NCBI GenBank assembly: GCA_000708835.1
Contig: DF236957.1
Span: 62,001 to 126,000 of the forward strand
DNA length: 64,000 nucleotides
Direction: 5' to 3'
Source of the DNA: Klebsormidium nitens
Taxonomy: Eukaryota > Plantae > Klebsormidiophyceae
Each line of letters opens with the position of its first letter. The first letter of the stretch is position 1. The notes beneath the pieces are model-generated. The model saw only the letters and a list, made by a program, of their open reading frames with translations, searched no databases and was not told the origin of the DNA. The position numbers and the translations under genes are program-made. Of the stretch, positions 630-36,587 are shown piece after piece.

Positions 630-3600
630 ATGGACAGCTTTTTCAAGAAGGCCCAGGAGTTCGCGAGCGCCTCGTTGAAGAAGTCTCAGGTGCGTCGGCC
701 GTCCACGAATGTTGGTCACATTATCGTTGGTCTTTCTCCTCATCGACGGATTGTCATTCATAAATAGACACATTTTTTGTCCTTCATTTAGTACCATGCA
801 GATTATTCGAGTTCGCTCACTTTGACCGCAACTCTTTTACTTCAAGTAAACCTTCTGATAAGGGCGCTAGCCTCCCCCTTGTCTTTGGATCTTTGGGTGA
901 TTTTCACTAGAGGATGCCGTGGGGGCTCACTAGAAGCATGCACGAGGGTGCATATTGCAGATCGAGGCAGACTTTGTATGCTGGTTGGTTGTGATGATAA
1001 CTCTCTCAATATTCGACCTCTGCGTTCTTTGCCCCCCAAATGGTGGGATTGGGGCAATGTTCAAGGCTCTTGAGAGGATTCTCGAGCGAAGCTGGCTTGA
1101 AAGACCCTTGGAACTCTGAGAACTTGAAAAAGCTATGATGGGACTGCATTTGGCTCGGTCCCACCTCATCATTAACGGCTCCTCGAGTAAAGTGCGTCCA
1201 TGTCAGAACCTGTTCATAATTGGTGACAGTTGTTGCCAAACAGTGTCGACCAAGTCATTCTGCCGCTCCTTTTGTGGTTCCCTTCCATGCCAATAGGGTC
1301 TTCACCTTCACAGGGTCTCACGCCATTCCGAATGTTTCTTAACACAACGATCCCTCAGCGATCTTGCCATCTATCTCAAGGTCTTTTCGCTCTTCCACTG
1401 TGACGCTAAAATGACTTTCTAGGATCTCTCCGTCCTTCATTTGCTCTGTCCTTCGTTTCGTCGGGGAAAGTACTTCCCCAGGAGCTCGCGGTCGTTCGCC
1501 CTCATTCTCTGTGTATGGTTCCTGTGCTCCTCTGTGCCCTTACAGGAGCCTTCCTTTTGTTGTGCCTTTATGAAGGGCAAGCCTTCACAGTCCAAACCAC
1601 TTGAAGATGCTAAAAGCTGAACCCTTTTGCTGTGAAGCATAACCATTGCGCTGAATAGTCCCAGGGACCACACAACGAGACGCCCTGTCATGCAGAGCTC
1701 CTCTACACTTACATTTCCTGCTTCTCATTCCCTTCTGATATGGAAAAGGAATTCCTTTTGGATCCCTTTTGAACGGAAACCCTCTGGTATGGAAAAGGAA
1801 CGACGTCTCTCTCCAGGAGCTTGCAACCACCGCCGCCGCCCAGTCCCGCGAGCTAGCTACTGAGACCGCGAAACAGACCCGCCTCGCCGCTCAGAGCTCG
1901 TACAAGGCCGCAGCAGAGGCCAGCAAGAAGGCCGAGATCAAGCTCAAGCAGTTGGCGCTCGACTTGAATGCAAAGGGGGGGCCTGGTCAACCCAGCAAAG
2001 AACAAGAGTTGCAAGAGGCGGGGATCACTGAGGAGCTGATCGACTTCATTCGGGGGATCGACATCAAGACATTCCGGCAATTTCCCTTGGAGGATGCGTT
2101 GTGTATCCTCAACTTCGAGCTTCAGTGCAAAACACTGTCAGGGGTGTTTCGCTCTGCCGTGCTTTCCTTCTTGCTTTCAGATAACTAGAGGCATCAAAAC
2201 GGCTCTGTATATTTACCCTTTTTGCATCCGGACACAAGTCGGTGTATATCTTCGTTGCTTGTCAGGGAGCCAAGAGCATGCTTGCTTGGGAGTTTCTCAG
2301 AGGGGAAACATTTGTCGTTGGAATGGACCACGAGCCTTCCAGGCCCCTATGTGTGAGTCGCAGGCCTCTCGCACCGCGCGGATTTTGTATTCGAAACACT
2401 GAGGGATCCCTCTGCAGTTATTGAAGTTCAGATTCTTCAGGGTTTGGGGCTTAAGATGTGCAGGTACAATGGTTTTACTGCGCTTTACATCCTGCCTCTA
2501 CCTGTCATCTCCTTGACGCCCTAAACAGCCGCACAAGCAGCCGCCGGCCTCCAGAAGACTGACAGCGGGATCAGTGACAACGGCAGCGACTCCCCATCCG
2601 AGAAGACCCCCAAGGAGCAACGGGTGGACGGCAGCGAGTTGACACCGTTTCAGGAGCACCATGCGACCCTGGTGCTCCAGACAGTGCAGGTGCGCTGCCT
2701 GGGATTATGAATGTTGATAGATAGTGCAGCTGAAGATCTTGTTGAAACCGTTGGTCAGCCGGGAAAGAGCAGAAGAACCGTAAACATCCTTGCAGAGAAA
2801 GGAAAATGTTTGTCACATTGGCAAGATTCTTGCAGATCGTTTTGAGGAGAGATGAAACGAACGGGTGGGGGAACAAGTGTTTACGAAGATTTTACGAAAC
2901 CATGCGGAATGAGAGGAGCAAAGATGAGACCAGATAAAAGTGCCAGGAAAGACCAAGAGGAGAACTATTGCCGTGAGTAACGATGGTCGTGGTGCCCCTG
3001 CAGGAAGTTGCGGACTTCCGGTACGTGTTGTGCCCACGGCGAATGAAGGAGTCCCGCTTCTGGAAGATCTACTTCACGCTAGTCCACTCACACATTGCCC
3101 CGTGAGTAGGTTCGAGGAGAAGTTGTTACATGCAGGCTTTCTTTGCGTTGCTTTTACCATCTAAGAACCTGGAGCCTATACTTTCTGACTGCTTCCTTCC
3201 AGACGTCTGCGCGATCTGTGGTATACGCGCAACATCTGGGATTGTGGACCTTTTCCTCAGTTCTGCTTGGCACAAAGGTCGGGACTGGTATCTGAGTTTG
3301 GGACTGGTATCTGAGTCTATCCTGCTTCTTTAGAGGCTTCCGTATCCGTTTGACAGTGTGGCTGGAGAGTCTCCCTTTCCTTTCCGAACGGCTGTAGAAC
3401 AGGAAGTGCTGGCTCACTTATTTCGTAAATCTTTCACGCTTGAATGTGGAGCTCTCTAGACAGTCTTCAGATTTTCAGTTGTCTTTGAATGGGGCCGAAT
3501 ATTCGGCAACCGAATCTTCAGAAGCCGTAAGTTTCTCATGGTTGAATGTGGAGCTATCTAGACAGTCTTCAGATGTTCTCAATGGTCTTTGAAACGGCAA

Positions 3601-6600
3601 TCGAATCTTCAGAAGCCTCGAAGATGGACACCGGAGGATGTCGTTTATGACGCCTGAGTTTTAGGGTTTTAGGGTTTTAGCGTTTTAAAGTTTTCATACC
3701 AGTAAGCGACGGTCCCTGCACGCCACCATTCAGGCTGTGAGTTCAAAGAGGGCGTCAGAGTTCAAGGCGCACTAGTGGCATCCAAGTCCTGACAGAAAAC
3801 CTCGTCGGACGGCTCGGATGCGCAATCTTCCTTTGCCTCAGCAACCAACATGGCCATCTGCACTGGAGGACCGTCACTTGGCCGGCAGCATAGCTGGTCT
3901 TCTTTCCTGGCCTGTACAGAAGTGCTCGAAGGTCTCTGGTCGCCCCGGTTTTAACGGTGAGACGACGCCGTTTCAAACGGACCCGCTTTGGATTGCAGGT
4001 ACGAGGCGCGCTGGCAGCAGGCCCAAGCCGCCAAGCAGCCGGCAGAGCCGCCAGCGGAAACTGCTGCGAAGGACTCAACGAAGCCCAGCGCAGCAGCCAC
4101 AACCGCTGCCAGCATTGCAGAGACCATGAAGCCGCTACAGGTGCGACTCGCAACAGGTCATCGATTCTAAGTTCCGTCTTTCAATGGCACAATAATCAGT
4201 TCTGGCTTTCTCTCGGAGATTTTGTCGGATCAATGAGTGTGGCTTTTGATGTTGGTATTTCGGTTTGTTAGAGGTTCGACATCCGTCTAAAAGGTGGAAA
4301 ATGTTTGCATGACTAGAAGAACTCGCTGGACACTTGTTCGCCCAAACTGCACTCTGCTTGGATGACATCAGCATCTTTCGCGCTTGCTTATTGCATGGTA
4401 GCCGGCACTTATCGCCATTGTCAAGCTTTCTTACAGTTGGCGCTTGATGTCACGCCCGCAGCAACTCACCAGATGCTGGTCTTTCCGGGTCATCGTTGTT
4501 AGAAAGATGCAAGTCGCGCTGTTTTTGTTCAATCGGGAGTGCAAATGATCAAGCACGGAACTTATTTGCAGTTGCTGTTCCAAAGCAAGCTCGTTCTGGT
4601 TTTTGACACCAAAGCCCATCGACGGCCTGTGCCAGTGTGGTCCGAGACTGATGCGGTGTCAACTGTATGCAGGAGTCGTTCCTAGTGGGCATCCAGGAGG
4701 TGCGGGCGGGCTTGACTCAGGCGGGGCGCACGATCGCCAGCAGCGTGACGTCATCATCCCCCAAGCCCGCAGGTGGGCCGCCATGCCAGGACCTTGCAAT
4801 CATTTTGAAGCGTTTTACTAAGCGTTTTACTTTAATATAAGTCTCGTAAGCAGGGGGAAAGCCAAGGGCCCCAGAGGCTTCATTCGAAATTATCGGAAGA
4901 GAATCGGATGTAGGAGATATGCGTCCTCTCCGAACCCGCTGCAGACGTTCATCCCTGCAGGGAAGCGCAAGTGCTAAGCCCGCCAAGGGAGAAAAGTGAT
5001 TCGAATGGCCATTGAAAATGGTTCCAAAACAATCCTGTTTATTCTTGTACCTCGTTAGTGGCGGCACCCGCGATCTGATTGCCGTCGAAGCTGTTTGAAA
5101 ATTCATCCTCCTTTGTGTTCCGTAAAGTGTCAAGTACTTGCGTCCCCTCAATTGCGCTGCTGAAATCCCGGTATTGCCTCTCGCAGAGAGTCCAAACCCA
5201 GCATTGACGGCATCTGCGGGTTTGATGGCCATCGACGCACTTTAAGATTCATCTAATGTTTCGTTCCGGCAACGGATTTTTGACTGACACCAGATTTCCT
5301 TCTTGGAGAGAAGCCCAAGTCCAAGCCCCGCCAACGCCCTTGAAGCCATGGAAACAGCGCAAAACTCGTTTTTTTCCATCTTCACCGGCGTATCAAGTAT
5401 CTTCAGTCCTATTCTCCTACCTCTCATTTTCTGTTCTTGCAGAGAAACCGAAGTCCAAGCCCGCCAACGGCGGCATCCGCGACCTGGCGGCCGTCAAGGC
5501 TGCCGCGGACGCTACCCCTGCCGCGTCCGAAAAGAAGCCGGCCGTCCGCGAGACGACGGGCGCGGTCCAAACCGCCACGGGTACCGAACCGAGCGCTACG
5601 AACCCGGACAAGAAAGAGGGACCTCGCGAAACGGACGGGAAGGCGGCTGCCGGGGGGGCGGTTTCGCAGGCGAAAGCCGGGGGGGGAAACGAGAAGGGCG
5701 AGGAGACGGACTTGGATGCGTATCTGATGGGCGCCTTGGACGATGACGGTGAGGGCCCCTCTACTTTCTAGCTTTCAGTCTTTCAGATGAGTTGTTTTCC
5801 GTTGCCAGTCCTCGACAGACCGGAGGTTGCGCATATCGTGCTAGTGGATGGATGCACTGGGCATGGTACGCACAGTTGAGTGTTTTGGCAGCTCGCTAGG
5901 TCTTTGGGTCAACCAAAACGGCAATCTTCCGGCGCGACTGGAGACTCCTCTTTGGTCTTCGATAGTGGAACCAATCCCTTCAATTCCGTAATCTAGGGAG
6001 TCAAGGATTGCTGCTTCTCCTACTTTCGTTCACGCTCTTAGCTATAGCAGCTTTGAAGAACGTGCAGAATGGCTGCTGCAATGGAACCCTCTGCTTTTAC
6101 GTTCGAGGGCAGCTAACGGATAAACTGAGTGAAGGGCTAATAGTCTGTGCAAATCTACAATTTCTGAACTACTGTAGGCGTGCTTTTTGTAGTTGACGAT
6201 GATGACGACGGGGAGGGCTTCAACGAAGAGGACTTCGAGAAGCTAGTCAACAGCGGGGTAAGAAGCGGACCTTCTTCGCTTAACTGCTTGCGGATGTCAA
6301 GGTTGTGATTATTGTGAGGTTTGCTGTTCCAGCATGCAGAGATGTGTCCGTCTGCCGTGCGCACTCTCCTGTGGATAGCGGTTCTCGCTGGACGTTAATG
6401 GTGGTAAAACAAGAGTGCTACTCAACCCCGTGTCTTGAGTTCTGGTGTCCGAGTTCGATCGTGACCATTCGGGCTCGATTGGCCGATCTTGCGAGCAAGC
6501 AGTGACTCAATATGTCAATATGTCAATGTATGTCAATATGTCAGTATGTCTGATTGTAGTATATCAGAACACATGCTCAGAGAGACCCCAAAAAACACTG

Positions 6601-6804
6601 CCAGACATAGCGGTCCATCACCTAACGAACAATTCACATCCTGCACTTTGCCCCTGGCGGTATTCACTTGAGACCTCCATTGGAGACTGAACCCACAAGT
6701 GGGTTCCCCTGCGCTTCTAGCTCGTCCTGACAGGTTTGTAACATTCCGCGCAGGGGTTCATGAAAGACGAGCACAAGGCTGATAAGGGGAAGGTTGCTTC
6801 ATGA
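630..6804 (+). CDS. BSD domain-containing protein (multi-exon; terminal exon tentative)
   Basis: Exons read from GT-AG boundaries: 630-689 (MDSFFKKAQEFASASLKKSQ); 1817-~2100 (ELATTAAAQSRE...GITEELIDFIRGIDIKTFRQFPLED, donor uncertain); 2529-2689 (...ELTPFQEHHATLVLQTVQ); 3004-3101 (EVADFRYVLCPRRMKESRFWKIYFTLVHSHIAP); 3999-4140; 4673-4772; 5443-5748; 6193-6257 (DDDDDGEGFNEEDFEKLVNSG); candidate last exon 6754-6804. QEHHA..VL...E...FRY.LCPR.MKE.RFWKIYF.L is the plant BSD-domain signature. If the 5749 donor is not used, the ORF stops at 5771. Confidence 0.85.
3440..3618. repeat. Two-copy ~102-bp tandem duplication in a BSD intron
   Basis: TTGAATGTGGAGCT.TCTAGACAGTCTTCAGAT at 3440 and 3542. Both copies end in CGAATCTTCAGAAGCC. 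Confidence 0.85.
3659..3690 (+). repeat. Interstitial telomere-like repeat (TTTTAGGG)n, degenerating
   Basis: ttttaggg ttttaggg ttttagcg ttttaaag. Confidence 0.7.
6507..6550. repeat. Short tandem repeat, unit ~TCAATATG, about 5 imperfect copies
   Basis: tcaatatg tcaatatg tcaatgtatg tcaatatg tcagtatgtc. Confidence 0.75.
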
Positions 6805-31262: not shown

Positions 31263-31531
31263 GTAGGAGTCAGGTGGCAGGAGCCAGTCGGGACTATGAT
31301 TGGAATCCGGATGCTGAGCCTCAGGTATCTTTAGCTCTGTCCAGTGTCCGACTCCAGGCCTGCAACTGATGACCACTGACCAGTTTGAAAGGGAGTCAGG
31401 TCTCAGGGACCTCTCTTGGGAGATCGTGGGAGGAATCCACCTCCAATGCACCTCAATCGCCGAGCTGACTCGACATTCAGGAAGTTTTACTGGCAGCTTC
31501 TTTAAAGTCGATAAAGGGGAGCCTGTGCAAG

Positions 31532-34500
31532 ATGGCGTCCCTGCGCTCTATCGGGCGCCCAGCTATGTCTCCCCTGGGGGCCCTTTTGGTGGCTGTGGTC
31601 TTGCTCTCACAGCAGATGAGCGGCGCAGCAGCTTTTAACGTCAGCTTCTTGCAAGGCTGCCCTGACTTCAACAACGTTACAAACCTCGACCTTAACTTCA
31701 AGAAGCTGGAAGGTCCCATTCCACCAGAGATAGGCAAATGCACTGCGCTAGCCAGCCTCAAGCTCAGCTTCAATTCAGACATCAGCGGCCAGATTCCGCC
31801 AGAGATTGGCCGCCTCAGCAACCTGCGGGCGCTTAAAATGGACTTTCTACCGAAGCTTACGGGGTCAATTCCCCCTGGATTGGCAATCTGTCCCAACTTG
31901 AGGAGCTGGATTTGTCGTTCAACAAGAGGCTCTCGGGACCCATTCCTCCAGAGTTGTGCCAACTGTCCAGACTACAGACATTGAAGCTGGCGTTCACAAA
32001 CCTTACGGGGCCCTTCCCAGATTGTTTGGGCAATTTAGCACGGCTGGAGACTTTGGACCTTGGTGGCACGTCGGGACTTCACACCTCCGGCAAAACATTG
32101 GAGATAGTGTCCCGCCTCACCAACCTCACCAATCTGAGGTTGTCCAGCGCCAACATATCGGGCTCTATACCCTTTGGGATTGGTAACATGACCAAGCTGC
32201 AACAGTTGGACCTATCATACAACAATTTGTCTTCACTAGCCTCCGTCACTCATGCCGGCCTTCGCCAACTTAAGAAGCTAGACCTGTCCCATAATCGCCT
32301 CTCAGGCCCCATTCCTTCTGAGTGGTTGTGCCAAATGTCCACCTTGGTTAACCTGGATTTGGGCTCCAACAACTTTTCAGGCCAAATACCAGCATGTTTG
32401 GCCAACCTCTCTGGGCTGCAGTTTGTGACACTTGCGGTGAATCGCTTGTCGGGGTCCATTCCTAGCGAGCTTGCGCTGCTGCCAAACCTGACATATCTTA
32501 GTTTGGGGTCAAACCTGCTCTCGGGAACCATTCCCTTAGAGCTTGCCAAGAGTACGAAGCTCTCCACTCTGAACCTTAGGAACAACAGTCTAACTGGGCC
32601 AATACCGCCTCAGCTCGTCGACCTTACCGAACTGGGTTACCTTGAGCTGTCCCACAATAAGCTGTCTGGCCCTTTACCTGCATTCACCAACATGTCTCGG
32701 TCTGCGGGTGCTGCCTTTTTGAAACTAGGCTCCAACAATCTGTCTGGACCCATTCCCCCCTCCCTCGGAAGCATCTCTGGATTCAGTAGCCTCGATCTGA
32801 GCTCTAGTCAACTTACAGGCGAGATCCCAGTTGTGTTCAGTACGTTCAGTGCGCTGGGGGTACTAGATCTTGGTCAAAACAATCTTCAAGGCCCAGTTAC
32901 ACCCTTGGCAAACCTGTCTAAGGTGACATACTTGGACCTCACGCACAATAGCTTTAGCGGGACCATCCCACCTAGCCTTTTTGTTGGGAAATCAGGGGTC
33001 TTTTTATCCCACAACAACTTCTCGGGCCCCATACCAAGGGAGGTCGCCGAGCTGCAGCCGACTTTCTCCTTCACAGACGCCCCATACCTACTCTTGGACC
33101 TGTCTTCCAATCAGCTGTCTGGCAGCCCCCCCCCAGAGCTGCAGCAGCTCTCAACCCTCCTGCAACTCAACCTGTCCAACAACAATCTATCGGGCTCCTT
33201 CCGAGTGGGGCCTTTCCGAAGGAGCCCCGTCTACAGCGCGCTCCTCGACTTCAGCAACAACGGGCCTCTGGCGATGCTTCCGGGAACCAACTTCAGCGGT
33301 CTTCAAGTGGTCGCCCTCCCCAATCTAACCTCCAGGGATCCCCCGCTGATCGCCCCCGACATGCGCGTTCTACAACTTAGCGGCGGGGTACACAAGAAGG
33401 GGTTGGACCTATCGGCAGTCCCTGCGACCTGCCCGTATGTAACGTACAACCGGGGGCCGGTGTCGGACATTACGTTCTGGGACGCGTGCACTGGAACGAC
33501 CGGTTGCCTGGTAAACCTGGTGGGTACCGGATCCAAGCTGAGCCGCGACGCGCGCAAGATGGTGTGCCTCAACCGGATCTCCGTCATCCTGGAGGGGGAT
33601 CCCCCGGCTCTGGTGTTCCCTTTTCAGTCCCCCCTGTCGCCCTATCTGAACAACAGCCGGGGGCCCTACTTCTTCAACGACAGCCGGTTTATCGACAAGA
33701 TCGACCTGGGTAAGGGCGGAGTTGCATACACGGGCGTCGGCTTTGCGCGCGTGCAAGAGGGCAACCTGTGCGGTAACCCGGAGGCCAAAACGGTGGTGGC
33801 CGTTACGTATGGCGTCTTTGCCGGTCTCATTCTCTTGAGCTCTCTCGGCTGGTGGGTCGCTGCTCGGCTCGGTTTCCCGGGCAAGGGCGACTCCTCGGGG
33901 CAAAAGACGGTTGTGACTCTTGGCTTATATACATGGAGTATCCTCTGTGCGCTGCTGCCGTGGGGCACTCTCGCCTCAAATGTGACCGTTGTGGCGGACA
34001 TTTGGGGGGCGTGGTCGGCTTGGGTCGTCCTAGCTTCGATCCTCGCACCGTATCTCGTCAGCGCCACGTGCGTGGCGTGGATTTGGTGGGGCGATTCAAC
34101 GTCCAACTCGATCTTGAAGGTGAGACTAAAAAGGACGTGACTACAAGTGCAAGGACTGGCAATCGATCGGCTGGCCGGCCGTTACACCTTATGAGGCAGA
34201 TTGCTTCGACGGACGTGAATTTGCACAGTGCTCGTTTTGTTCTGTTCTGAAATGCGGGTTAGAGCTCGCCACAAAATCGAAGCTGCCGTTAACCCGGCCT
34301 GCTCAGCGGTTGGTTACCTTGCCTTCTAAAGGCCCAGGCACTAACGAAGATTTCAACCGTCAACCACGAATGCAATATAACTCTGTCCCGGATGGAAAGT
34401 TGCATTCTGGACTATGCATCAGCAGCGGCGCATCTCCTATCAGTAGGACACTCTTCCCCTTCCGTTTGCTGCGTCGCTCCGTCTCCTTTCTTGCTCCATG

Positions 34501-35082
34501 TTCCACTAGACTCGTCTCCTCACCTGTCGTCCTTCTCTTTCCCGCCAGGCGCGCTTCAAGTGGGTCTGGTTCGCCGACCTCACCGACGCATACCCCCCGC
34601 CACCTTTGAACGGACTCCCCGCCTGGCGATACCCTCTGGCACTCATCTCTCTACCCAGCGCCGCGGCAGCTGTTGTCGCCTATGACGTCATCGCGTTTGC
34701 GGATAAAGTTGGGTTCCACCTCTGGTGGGGCGAGGATATTTACACCATGCTTCCGTACTTCGACTTCCGCTCACAGCTGGATCTGGTCCTCCGGTCCATA
34801 CCCCAAGCGATATTCCAGAGTGTGCTCTACTTACTGGGCAGCTCTCGGGCGACGCGTATTTACATCGACCAGCAGATTTTCACCGTCTCGATCTCCTTCT
34901 CCCTCGTGAGTATCCTCGTGCAGTACAACTTGCTTCTGAAGGAGACCATTGAGACGAGAGTTCCGGTGGCGATGATTGTTCGGAAGCGCTTCGCGGCCGC
35001 AAACAGTCGCCCCTGTTTGATGCGGACAGCTGGCAAGACGGAGGACGCTGGAGGGTTCGTCGACGAGAAGGGTGCCCCGTAG
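31532..35082 (+). CDS. Signal peptide + ~21-22 plant-type extracellular LRRs + multi-pass XK-related-like membrane domain, no kinase; 1-bp frameshift at 31871-31875
   Basis: ORF 31532-31984 (signal peptide, first 3 LRRs) continues in ORF 31912-34140 if one C is added to the C5 run, restoring IPPWIGNLSQLEELDLSFNKRLSGPIPPEL. LxxLxLSxNxLSGxIP repeats run to ~33270. Donor AAG|gtgaga at 34119, acceptor cag|GCG at 34549, exon 2 runs to TAG 35082. There are several hydrophobic helices and the motif LRSIPQAIFQ...SISFSLVSI. Confidence 0.85.
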
Positions 35083-36587
35083 TTGGCTTAGTGGGAAAAC
35101 GGAGCGTTCGGCCACCATATGTCTCTGCTAGACTTAGAAGTGGCTTCTGATTTTAGGTTCTATATCGCGTTTAGTATAATGTCGGATCTCGAGGTAGTGC
35201 AGAAACTGGTAGAGCACAGACTCGTTTGTTGTTTGAAGTTGGATAGGACCTTTGATCCGCTTGAGTGGAGCAGGCTAAAGCCAGTCTCATGTAGTCTCAG
35301 TTGATATATTTTAGAAGGATTGTCCGGCCCATAGTTTCGAGTACAGGTAATCCACGAACTTAGGAGGCGGCATCATCATGCATCAATCCCACAGGCCCCG
35401 TCCGAGAACAGAAGACGTAGATATACCTCAGTCGCAAACATAGGCTCGGTGTGGAAAGGTATTGGGGAACTGGGAAAGGTTCAGTGGTTCGGATCTTTGT
35501 CGCCTTCCTCGCTTTCGATAAGCTGCGTCTATCATGATATCATGCTCATGAAGAAGTCGGTCAGATTGATTCACAAAGTCATAGGTTGACGGGGCGTGCC
35601 ATTGGCGTATGCACATGAGGACGAACGCGTACGGTAACGCTTCCAAACGCGGAAGCACTCGCGCACAATGGTTTTCATTGAGTACAATGATCAGAAGCGA
35701 TGTCTTATATGTATCAGTCGTACAAATTGATGTATATTACGCTCTGGGTTTTAGGGTTGCATGGTTGCATATGCTATCATGTTTATGTCGGACTGGCAGG
35801 CCCGTTGCTCATACAGCTTACGGCGGCTGGACGGGGCCAGCATAATGAATACTCGTTTCTAGAACACCATTCGAGAGCTCACCACAGTATTCTGCTGACG
35901 GTCAGCTGACAGAAACCTCAGATACCTAGCTCTTGAAAGCGCAGATCGAGGCTGCACTTGTGTACCAATCCTTAGAGCGATGCACATGTGGTGTATATTT
36001 ACACTTGGATTTGATAGGGCCGGATAAGCGTGAATACGGGCCACGACGCATACTCACGTATGCAATTGTACGCGACATCATACGGCCATGATGAAGCATT
36101 AAATCTAGCACAATCTGCCAGGAGGCTGGGGCGGCATCGCTCACATGCCATGCTGATCTTTTGCATTCGCCATCGCCGCGGCCTTATTCTCCCTATGCTG
36201 ACTGAGGGACATCACATGATGCGAATTTCGTCTGTTCTGAGCGAGATTTCCATGCCGTTTGGAGCGATGCGGCGAGACTCTTACGTATTAACCTCAGATA
36301 ACCGGCCAAATCAACATGTACCGTCAGGGTTCCCATGCCTGATCTCAGGCCGGTTTGAGGCCACCGGTCAGTATTAGTCTCACAGGATCGAGCTTGAGCC
36401 TGGTCGTAGGAACTTGGGACAAGGTCCCTGAAAGGGTTGTTCCATTGCTTTAACAACGGAACCGGCGACAACAATTATTTCACTGCACTTCGCGTATCTA
36501 TGTATAGGACTTCAAGTTGACGCGCTAAATCGAGTTGTGTGGCAAAATGTATCACACCAGCTTTGTACAGTGTCTGCCTCCCCCAAA

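Follow-up and report, generated by a model that had tools for sequence, protein, structure and literature searches.

A frameshifted leucine-rich-repeat gene of Klebsormidium nitens from a family with a candidate half-XK membrane module

The gene and its transcript

The DNA analysed here (hereafter the window) is a stretch of 64,000 nucleotides of the genome of Klebsormidium nitens, a streptophyte green alga, and this report concerns the gene at positions 31532-35082 of its plus strand. The gene corresponds to K. nitens KFL_000080140. The part of its long exon outside the leucine-rich repeats (LRRs) is 100% identical to the stored protein P0001 (881 residues, 'hypothetical protein KFL_000080140'). 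Its three coding pieces encode a signal-peptide-like N-terminus and LRRs, a Cys-containing juxtamembrane module, and a membrane module consisting of an anchor helix (TM0; TM, transmembrane) and five further predicted helices, alpha1-alpha5 (Table 1). Taken as a whole, the explanation that we consider probable is that the locus is one member of a Klebsormidium-lineage family of membrane proteins, in which LRRs are combined with TM0 and half of an XK-related domain, and that the copy found here is a loss-of-function copy.

The second reading frame of the locus is open from before 31879 to 34140, and the piece at 34549-35082 lies in the same frame. The donor at 34120 (NSILK, AAG/gtgaga) and the acceptor at 34548/34549 (ccgccag/GCGCGC) join the second and third pieces in phase. 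P0001, which is NCBI's own model, shares this last junction (...NSILK/ARFKW...). The protein ends about 40 residues beyond alpha5, and the transcript beyond that point is 3' untranslated region only. When the paralogues were compared with the window by tblastn, one copy only was found, with no tandem paralogue.

The transcript was analysed by placing contigs of public sequencing runs on window positions 31400-35300. Single contigs in the RNA-type runs X4, X6 and X10, which belong to three studies, run from 31404 (or 32038) to 34117 and then from 34547 to 35300, with 0 mismatches and 0 gaps. The skip in these RNA contigs is the 429-nucleotide GT..AG intron; the DNA run X1 has no such joint. Since the RNA-type contigs join 34119 to 34549, the last exon belongs to the LRR gene. 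A preliminary description of this DNA, made from the sequence alone, had assumed this junction, and the contigs of all three studies span it. The NCBI model P0001 has a further intron at about 31915-32308 ('RSWIC/PIPSEW'), which drops about 130 LRR codons. This intron was rejected because the RNA-type contigs are colinear with the genome there; it is an annotation artefact.

Table 1. Coding pieces, predicted helices and other features of the gene, in window coordinates.
Feature	Position	Strand	Basis
Start codon ATG, signal-peptide-like N-terminus and LRR1-3; first frame, 115 codons to ...TGSIPP	31532-31876	+	Open reading frame (ORF) list and translation; weak LRR_1 match; aligns with the N-terminus of the orthologue
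Site of the 1-nucleotide deletion that shifts the frame	31877-31878	+	DNA alignment to L001; three-frame translation; DNA and RNA contigs with 0 gaps over 31404-34117
Other LRRs, about 17, plant-type; second frame, many NxS/T sites	31879-33201	+	Pfam LRR_1 E=3.2e-36, LRR_8 E=1.4e-33; repeat scan
Conserved Cys-containing extracellular juxtamembrane module	33406-33786	+	Family alignments A1/A3; AlphaFold model 2
TM0 anchor helix (outside to inside), then K/R-rich loop	33793-33864	+	Hydropathy; helix 6-36 in model 1
XK-like alpha1 and alpha2; alpha1 with T-L-A-S-N at the D-x-x-T-D position; alpha2 with W..W..L...AP	33895-34092	+	Model helices 45-79 and 84-110; residue table; aligned to XKR9 and XKR8 N-terminal repeats
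Intron, 429 nucleotides, GT..AG, phase 0	34120-34548	+	Sequence; junction in contigs of RNA-type runs X4, X6 and X10
Last exon: alpha3, alpha4, alpha5, cytoplasmic tail, stop	34549-35082	+	Translation; homologue search; model helices; ratio of nonsynonymous to synonymous substitution rates (dN/dS) 0.16 against the orthologue
alpha3	34621-34710	+	Model helix
alpha4 with D-L-V-L-R-S-I-P-Q	34750-34836 (RSIPQ 34792-34806)	+	Translation and model helix; loop GSSRATRIYID after it
alpha5	34870-34956	+	Model helix
Stop codon	35080-35082	+	Translation

The frame break and the state of this copy

An orthologue of the gene was found on contig L001 of JGI sample 3300060285. It has 87% nucleotide identity with the window gene and is open through all three coding pieces. 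The DNA alignment to L001 showed that a single A is absent between 31877 and 31878, the window reading CCCCCTG-GATTGG and the orthologue CCCCCTGAGATTGG. Past the deletion, the first frame ends at a stop at 31982-31984, and the mRNA as read encodes a secreted fragment of 150 residues. The next in-frame ATG downstream would give a product without signal peptide. A sequencing error was considered as the cause of the frameshift and rejected, since the DNA and RNA contigs both agree with the window; as both match it without gaps, the frame break is real. Because the frameshift occurs after LRR3 in the genome and in the transcripts alike, the window copy probably gives no full-length receptor in the sequenced strain, and any receptor function of the frameshifted copy in that strain seems unlikely.

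The dN/dS of the window gene against the L001 orthologue was 0.32 for the N-terminal piece, 0.21 for the long exon and 0.16 for the last exon. These values show purifying selection on the gene and a recent origin of the deletion in the sequenced strain. Judged from these comparisons, the window copy is most likely a recent loss-of-function (null) allele, still transcribed, of a family under selection.

The family in Klebsormidium

A search with the last exon alone (177 residues) against 1.84 billion representatives gave 39 proteins at E<=1e-3, 30 of which were at E<=1e-10. Many of the short family 'proteins' of 130-250 residues are last-exon fragments made by prokaryote-style gene callers. Since many of the 39 representatives are fragments, that count overstates the size of the family. 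The orthologue on L001 was split in the same manner into an LRR ORF that reads into the intron (3001-5652) and a separate last-exon ORF (6205-6615), and splitting of this kind was noticed among P0014-P0056.

The family includes at least eight named K. nitens proteins, namely those behind P0001, P0006, P0010 and P0012, together with GAQ78274, GAQ93027, GAQ84842 and GAQ78170. Several of the K. nitens paralogues have been given the name 'FLS2' automatically, and the remaining members were drawn from JGI and Logan assemblies. Full-length members combine a signal peptide and LRRs with the Cys juxtamembrane module and the same membrane module, the LRR subtype being different in some of them. The same arrangement from the LRRs to the membrane module was seen in more than 10 full-length paralogues. 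The preliminary description had raised the question of an expanded family that combines LRRs with an SxPQ motif. Such a family is present in K. nitens, with the paralogues named above, and a motif of the E/R-S-x-P-Q type is kept, with some variation, by the members compared.

Ectodomain and juxtamembrane module

The N-terminus right after the ATG is hydrophobic and resembles a signal peptide. The LRRs, with the pattern LxxLxLxxNxLSGxIP, number about 20, 3 before the break and about 17 after it, close to the 21-22 plant-type repeats of the preliminary description, which had also recognised the signal peptide. The repeats are of the plant-specific 24-residue type. The ectodomain thus combines the signal peptide and the plant-type LRRs that characterise LRR receptor-like proteins (RLPs) and LRR receptor-like kinases (RLKs).

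The juxtamembrane module that follows has the consensus DLSxVPxxC ... FWxAC..GC ... VCL ... AYTGVGFxRVQxGNLCGNPEA. In the family alignments A1/A3, C129, C41 and C61 are invariant or nearly so. AlphaFold modelled the region as short strands and helices (model mb3a89ae42f75, residues 1-130) with a predicted local distance difference test score (pLDDT) of about 80-93, and Pfam scans gave no family match for it. Within the module, a stretch of 51 nucleotides at window 33721-33771, which encodes the family-invariant AYTGVGFARVQEGNLC, is common to contigs of other transcripts or loci (4 mismatches), the sequences diverging beyond it. As the stretch is shared across loci, the paralogues conserve it at the nucleotide level.

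Structure and topology of the membrane module

Two AlphaFold models of the membrane region were made. Model 1 (m78437dcd1399) covers P0001:586-881 and was built from 20 sequences (pLDDT 81.4, predicted TM-score (pTM) 0.79). Model 2 (mb3a89ae42f75) covers P0001:460-881 and was built from 24 sequences (pLDDT 84.0, pTM 0.80). In both, six long helices, TM0 and five others, come after the ectodomain. About 5-6 hydrophobic segments in place of a single TM helix had been noticed before; the models agree with that observation, and the two hydrophobic strings quoted at the time are both found verbatim in the sequence. Pfam scans of the window protein revealed no kinase domain. The net charge across the family is +2.5 for the loop after TM0 and +2.0 for the alpha2-alpha3 loop. 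With these positive loops on the cytoplasmic side and the ectodomain outside, the topology agrees with that of an XK repeat with both ends in the cytoplasm.

Each model was aligned with VIA-align 2 to all 48,161 PDB cluster representatives. The first rank for model 1 was rat XKR9 (7p16_A), with a Z of 10.2 and a root-mean-square deviation (rmsd) of 3.5 A over 152 residues, model 52-256 lying on chain 4-190. Human XKR4 (9boj_B) was second with a Z of 9.3, and human XKR8 (8xej_X, chain 7-196) was sixth with a Z of 8.0. For model 2, XKR9, XKR4 and XKR8 were found at ranks 1, 2 and 5 with Z of 10.1, 9.7 and 8.0. Repeat units of Piezo from C. elegans, human and mouse ranked between the XKR entries (ranks 3-7, Z 8-9), and unrelated bundles had Z<=7.5. 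The Piezo units come immediately after the XKR structures, a hint that XK repeats and the 4-TM units of Piezo are alike in a general way.

A shape search of the ESM Atlas was headed by a cluster of 156 residues, 54% of the members of which carry PF09815, the XK-related family of Pfam. The TM score was 0.77 (by hit) over 147 residues with an rmsd of 3.1 A, and that of the next row was 0.25. Structural similarity to the N-terminal repeat of XK proteins was hence found with the two models and with the Atlas cluster. PF09815 clusters were also among the language-model neighbours, with scores of 0.83 and 0.89; these are to be taken as leads only. The Atlas's own low-confidence models of P0006 and P0010 were set aside, their structural neighbours being meaningless. 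The nearest Atlas clusters are short eukaryotic proteins of 156-270 residues from Foraminifera, Mucoromycota and Mollusca, some of them with PF09815. Half-XK proteins that exist on their own may occur widely and for the most part lack annotation.

Sequence matches to XK-related proteins

In a Pfam scan of 49 family members, taken one by one, PF09815 was the sole membrane family matched by more than two members. It was matched by three; CcmH and Tmpp129 were matched by two each, and more weakly (E 0.095 and 0.22). P0046 matched with E=7.9e-4 and 18.9 bits, residues 274-473 lying on profile positions 3-174 of 337. The matches of P0043 (E=0.01) and P0044 (E=0.0072) cover profile positions 5-190 and 33-162, respectively, and the two have bit scores of 15.3 and 15.8. 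The three matches are co-linear and all lie within the N-terminal half of the profile. No Piezo family of Pfam was matched in the 49 members. Searches of PDB sequences by phmmer with the membrane domains of P0006 and P0046 gave nothing relevant. A word-indexed profile search with the family alignment returned family members only, and no bridge sequence annotated with PF09815.

The preliminary description had put the XK portion at only about half of a domain. All matches are in fact to the N-terminal repeat only (Pfam 3-190 of 337; XKR9 4-190; XKR8 7-196). Because only the N-terminal domain (ND) is covered, and because the protein ends shortly after alpha5 with nothing but untranslated region beyond, the module is best regarded as one whole XK repeat placed after an anchor helix.

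Key residues of the module

XKR9 is built of two related repeats, ND and the C-terminal domain (CD), each with four TM helices and a partly inserted helix (PMC8298096). In Xkr8, D26 and D30 on alpha1 and E137 and E141 on alpha4 are essential, and the hydrophilic path proposed for lipids is formed by alpha1, alpha2, alpha4 and alpha5, all of which are in ND (PMC8500837). In Xkr4, D123-V-G-T-D127 on TM1 and E310-S311 on TM3 bind extracellular Ca2+; E310K forms a salt bridge by which Ca2+ is bypassed, and the activity of E310R is weak (PMC10495444).

In the residue table of the algal family, D-x-x-[TS]-D is kept on alpha1 by 15 of the 20 members. The alpha4 pattern [ED]-x-x-x-[E/R/Q]-[STAG]-x-P is kept by all 20, and Q follows the P in 18. 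The position that corresponds to Xkr4-E310 (A2 alpha4 column, window 34792-34794) is occupied by R in 11 members, by E in 8 and by Q in 1. By analogy with Xkr4, the R-type paralogues may be variants with a built-in salt bridge.

On alpha1 the window copy and its orthologue carry T..N, and on alpha4 D...R (R-S-I-P-Q); both are therefore without three of the four acidic positions. The acidic pair on TM1 and the Glu on TM3 that mark the XK family are thus absent from the window copy. This agrees with the preliminary description, according to which the XK motifs appear in the same order with substitutions at the acidic positions. In the window copy, T..N stands for D..D and R for E; the paralogues mostly keep D-x-x-T-D and E-S-x-P-Q.

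Discussion

With good confidence, we regard the five-helix module as a remote homologue of a single XK repeat, that is, of the ND alpha1-alpha5 of Xkr8, Xkr9 and Xkr4. XK homology is favoured because XKR structures came to the top of an unbiased search twice, the Atlas gave an independent match, the Pfam matches are co-linear and the motifs agree. Several observations weigh against it, and most of them would be expected if the module were a lineage-specific multi-pass anchor or oligomerisation domain of no XK ancestry, resembling XK proteins through generic four- or five-helix bundle packing and chance motifs. No PF09815 match reaches the gathering score (best 18.9 against 24.8 bits). The window's own protein has no Pfam match at all in the membrane region in single-sequence scans, and four paralogue C-termini are likewise without an XK match. 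Foldseek searches of the PDB with both models gave only noise and no match at E<=0.001, and a hidden Markov model of the family (20 domains) found nothing at E<=10 among PDB sequences. A Z near 10 is within the chance range for helical bundles, since by the aligner's own note values below about 13 are common for helical models; Piezo had Z of 8-9 and unrelated bundles of 6-7.5. In addition, the match to the acidic positions of Xkr8 and Xkr4 was drawn from the motifs and from approximate coordinates on the profile instead of a checked structural alignment, and the window copy itself is frameshifted and lacks most of those residues. The match to an XK profile or structure that the preliminary description had called for was therefore obtained in part: PF09815 was matched below threshold and XKR structures came first, whereas no match passed the gathering score and Foldseek was negative. 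Chance resemblance nevertheless seems improbable to us. Three of the few XKR representatives were placed in the top 5-6 of 48,161 chains with two separate models, and the first Atlas cluster, a PF09815 cluster, stood far above the rest. Three independent sequence matches are co-linear in the same half of PF09815, and two XK signature motifs occur on the matching helices with matching spacing. None of the three outcomes that the preliminary description named as refuting its reading was observed: XK profiles and structures are matched, the predicted helices number six, and RNA contigs connect the last exon to the LRR exon.

The Piezo chains of C. elegans, human and mouse at ranks 3-7 would be accounted for if the module were a transmembrane helical unit of the Piezo kind, with a role that would then be mechanosensory in place of lipid-handling. 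We consider this very unlikely. The rmsd was 3.7-5.3 A for Piezo against 3.2-3.5 A for XKR9, the identity was lower, and the alignments depend on TM0. Moreover, it is PF09815 and not Piezo that recurs in the sequence scans, the Atlas likewise gives XK, and the module is a single unit, not a tandem array of 4-TM units. It might also be argued that the gene model is an artefact in which an LRR receptor-like gene has been joined to a separate small membrane-protein gene beside it. Prokaryote-style callers do split the locus on related contigs into an LRR ORF and an ORF of 136-250 residues. However, in three studies the GT..AG junction is crossed in frame by single RNA-type contigs. Moreover, the LRR exon encodes alpha1 and alpha2 and the last exon alpha3-alpha5, so that one fold spans the intron, and the arrangement is repeated in the full-length paralogues. 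Such an artefact of the gene model is, in our opinion, extremely improbable.

XK-type scramblases are known as apoptosis and 'eat-me' effectors of animals; they are switched on from within the cell and are activated by caspases or kinases. The algal alpha1-alpha5 fold matches the N-terminal repeat of the XK-related proteins (PF09815; Xkr8, Xkr9, Xkr4, XK, CED-8) with Z of 8-10.2 over about 150 residues. In most of the algal paralogues, helix 1 carries D-x-x-T-D and the third membrane helix E-S-x-P-Q, the residues for Ca2+ binding and for the path in Xkr4 and Xkr8. Unlike XK-related proteins, the algal module has one repeat where those have two, and it is preceded by an extra anchor helix and a large LRR ectodomain. 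The algal proteins have no recognisable C-terminal plug of the kind cleaved by caspases, about half of the paralogues have R at the Xkr4-E310 position, and they belong to a green (streptophyte) alga. The ESM Atlas contains short XK-like proteins of protists and fungi that stand alone (156-270 residues); they are similar in size, provide the best shape match (the cluster with a TM score of 0.77) and are the nearest language-model neighbours. These proteins, however, have no LRR ectodomain and are known only as predicted clusters.

The other half of the protein resembles plant LRR-RLPs and LRR-RLKs, for example those with FLS2-type ectodomains, in its signal peptide, 24-residue LRRs and many N-glycosylation sites. 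It differs from them in having six membrane helices instead of a single TM helix, neither a kinase nor a short tail, and a family-specific Cys module after the LRRs. Because there are six helices and no kinase, the single TM helix with a short tail or kinase that defines LRR-RLPs and LRR-RLKs is not found here. A conceptual parallel, and no more than that, is provided by the complexes of Xkr8 with Basigin or Neuroplastin (PMC8500837), where a single-pass helix with an extracellular domain stands beside an XK-type bundle. In the algal proteins, by contrast, the helix, the ectodomain and the XK-like module are covalently joined in one chain, and LRRs take the place of the immunoglobulin domains. 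The family is thus a new domain architecture made from known parts, and it works fully like neither the XK family nor the LRR-RLP/RLK family. A full-text literature search, which covered few subscription-journal papers, found no paper connecting XK-related proteins to Klebsormidium, algae, LRRs or Viridiplantae, and the architecture is undescribed in the literature covered.

The most economical model of how these proteins might act draws on the workings of LRR receptors and of Xkr4 and Xkr8. TM0 would allow the extracellular LRR domain to be connected to an XK repeat whose first helix starts in the cytoplasm. The family would then represent kinase-less surface receptors, the output of which would be some change within the membrane module. 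Two half-XK modules would be brought together when a ligand causes two chains to pair, or else the contacts between alpha1 and alpha4 could shift, via Ca2+ in the E-type paralogues or via a built-in salt bridge in the R-type ones. By either route, lipid scrambling would be altered or a partner recruited. The gating of scrambling or cell death by LRR ligand binding, as put forward in the preliminary description, is not supported by the present results. A scrambling-type activity in the intact paralogues, suggested by analogy with XK proteins, is conceivable and on balance doubtful. It is rather improbable that LRR-mediated, ligand-induced dimerisation of two half-XK modules forms a full two-repeat XK-like scramblase, by which, in a new class of receptors, perception at the cell surface would be converted directly into a loss of lipid asymmetry or a permeability signal without a kinase. 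If such dimerisation did occur, the E/R dimorphism at the Xkr4-E310 position would set Ca2+-dependent paralogues apart from others that use a salt bridge and need no Ca2+, and the two proposals taken together are again improbable.

Should the relationship to XK proteins be true, the XK fold would extend to the plant lineage. The algal proteins would then provide a natural single-repeat version, which could serve as a test bed for the origin of the two-repeat fold and for assigning the lipid path to one repeat or the other. At the Ca2+-glue position, the variation between E and R would amount to a natural mutagenesis series. The family would also suggest that LRR receptors of an early-diverging streptophyte lineage have an output that needs no kinase.

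Additional observations

In P0021 (residues 243-273), a family fragment, Sel1 repeats (PF08238, E=5e-18) come after the XK-like segment. This would be either another architecture or a fusion introduced by gene calling.

An ATG-initiated ORF of 89 codons lies upstream of the gene at window 31369-31638 and overlaps the annotated start in another frame, and the RNA contigs reach further upstream. Because the RNA contigs extend upstream of this ORF, it may be an upstream open reading frame of the transcript.

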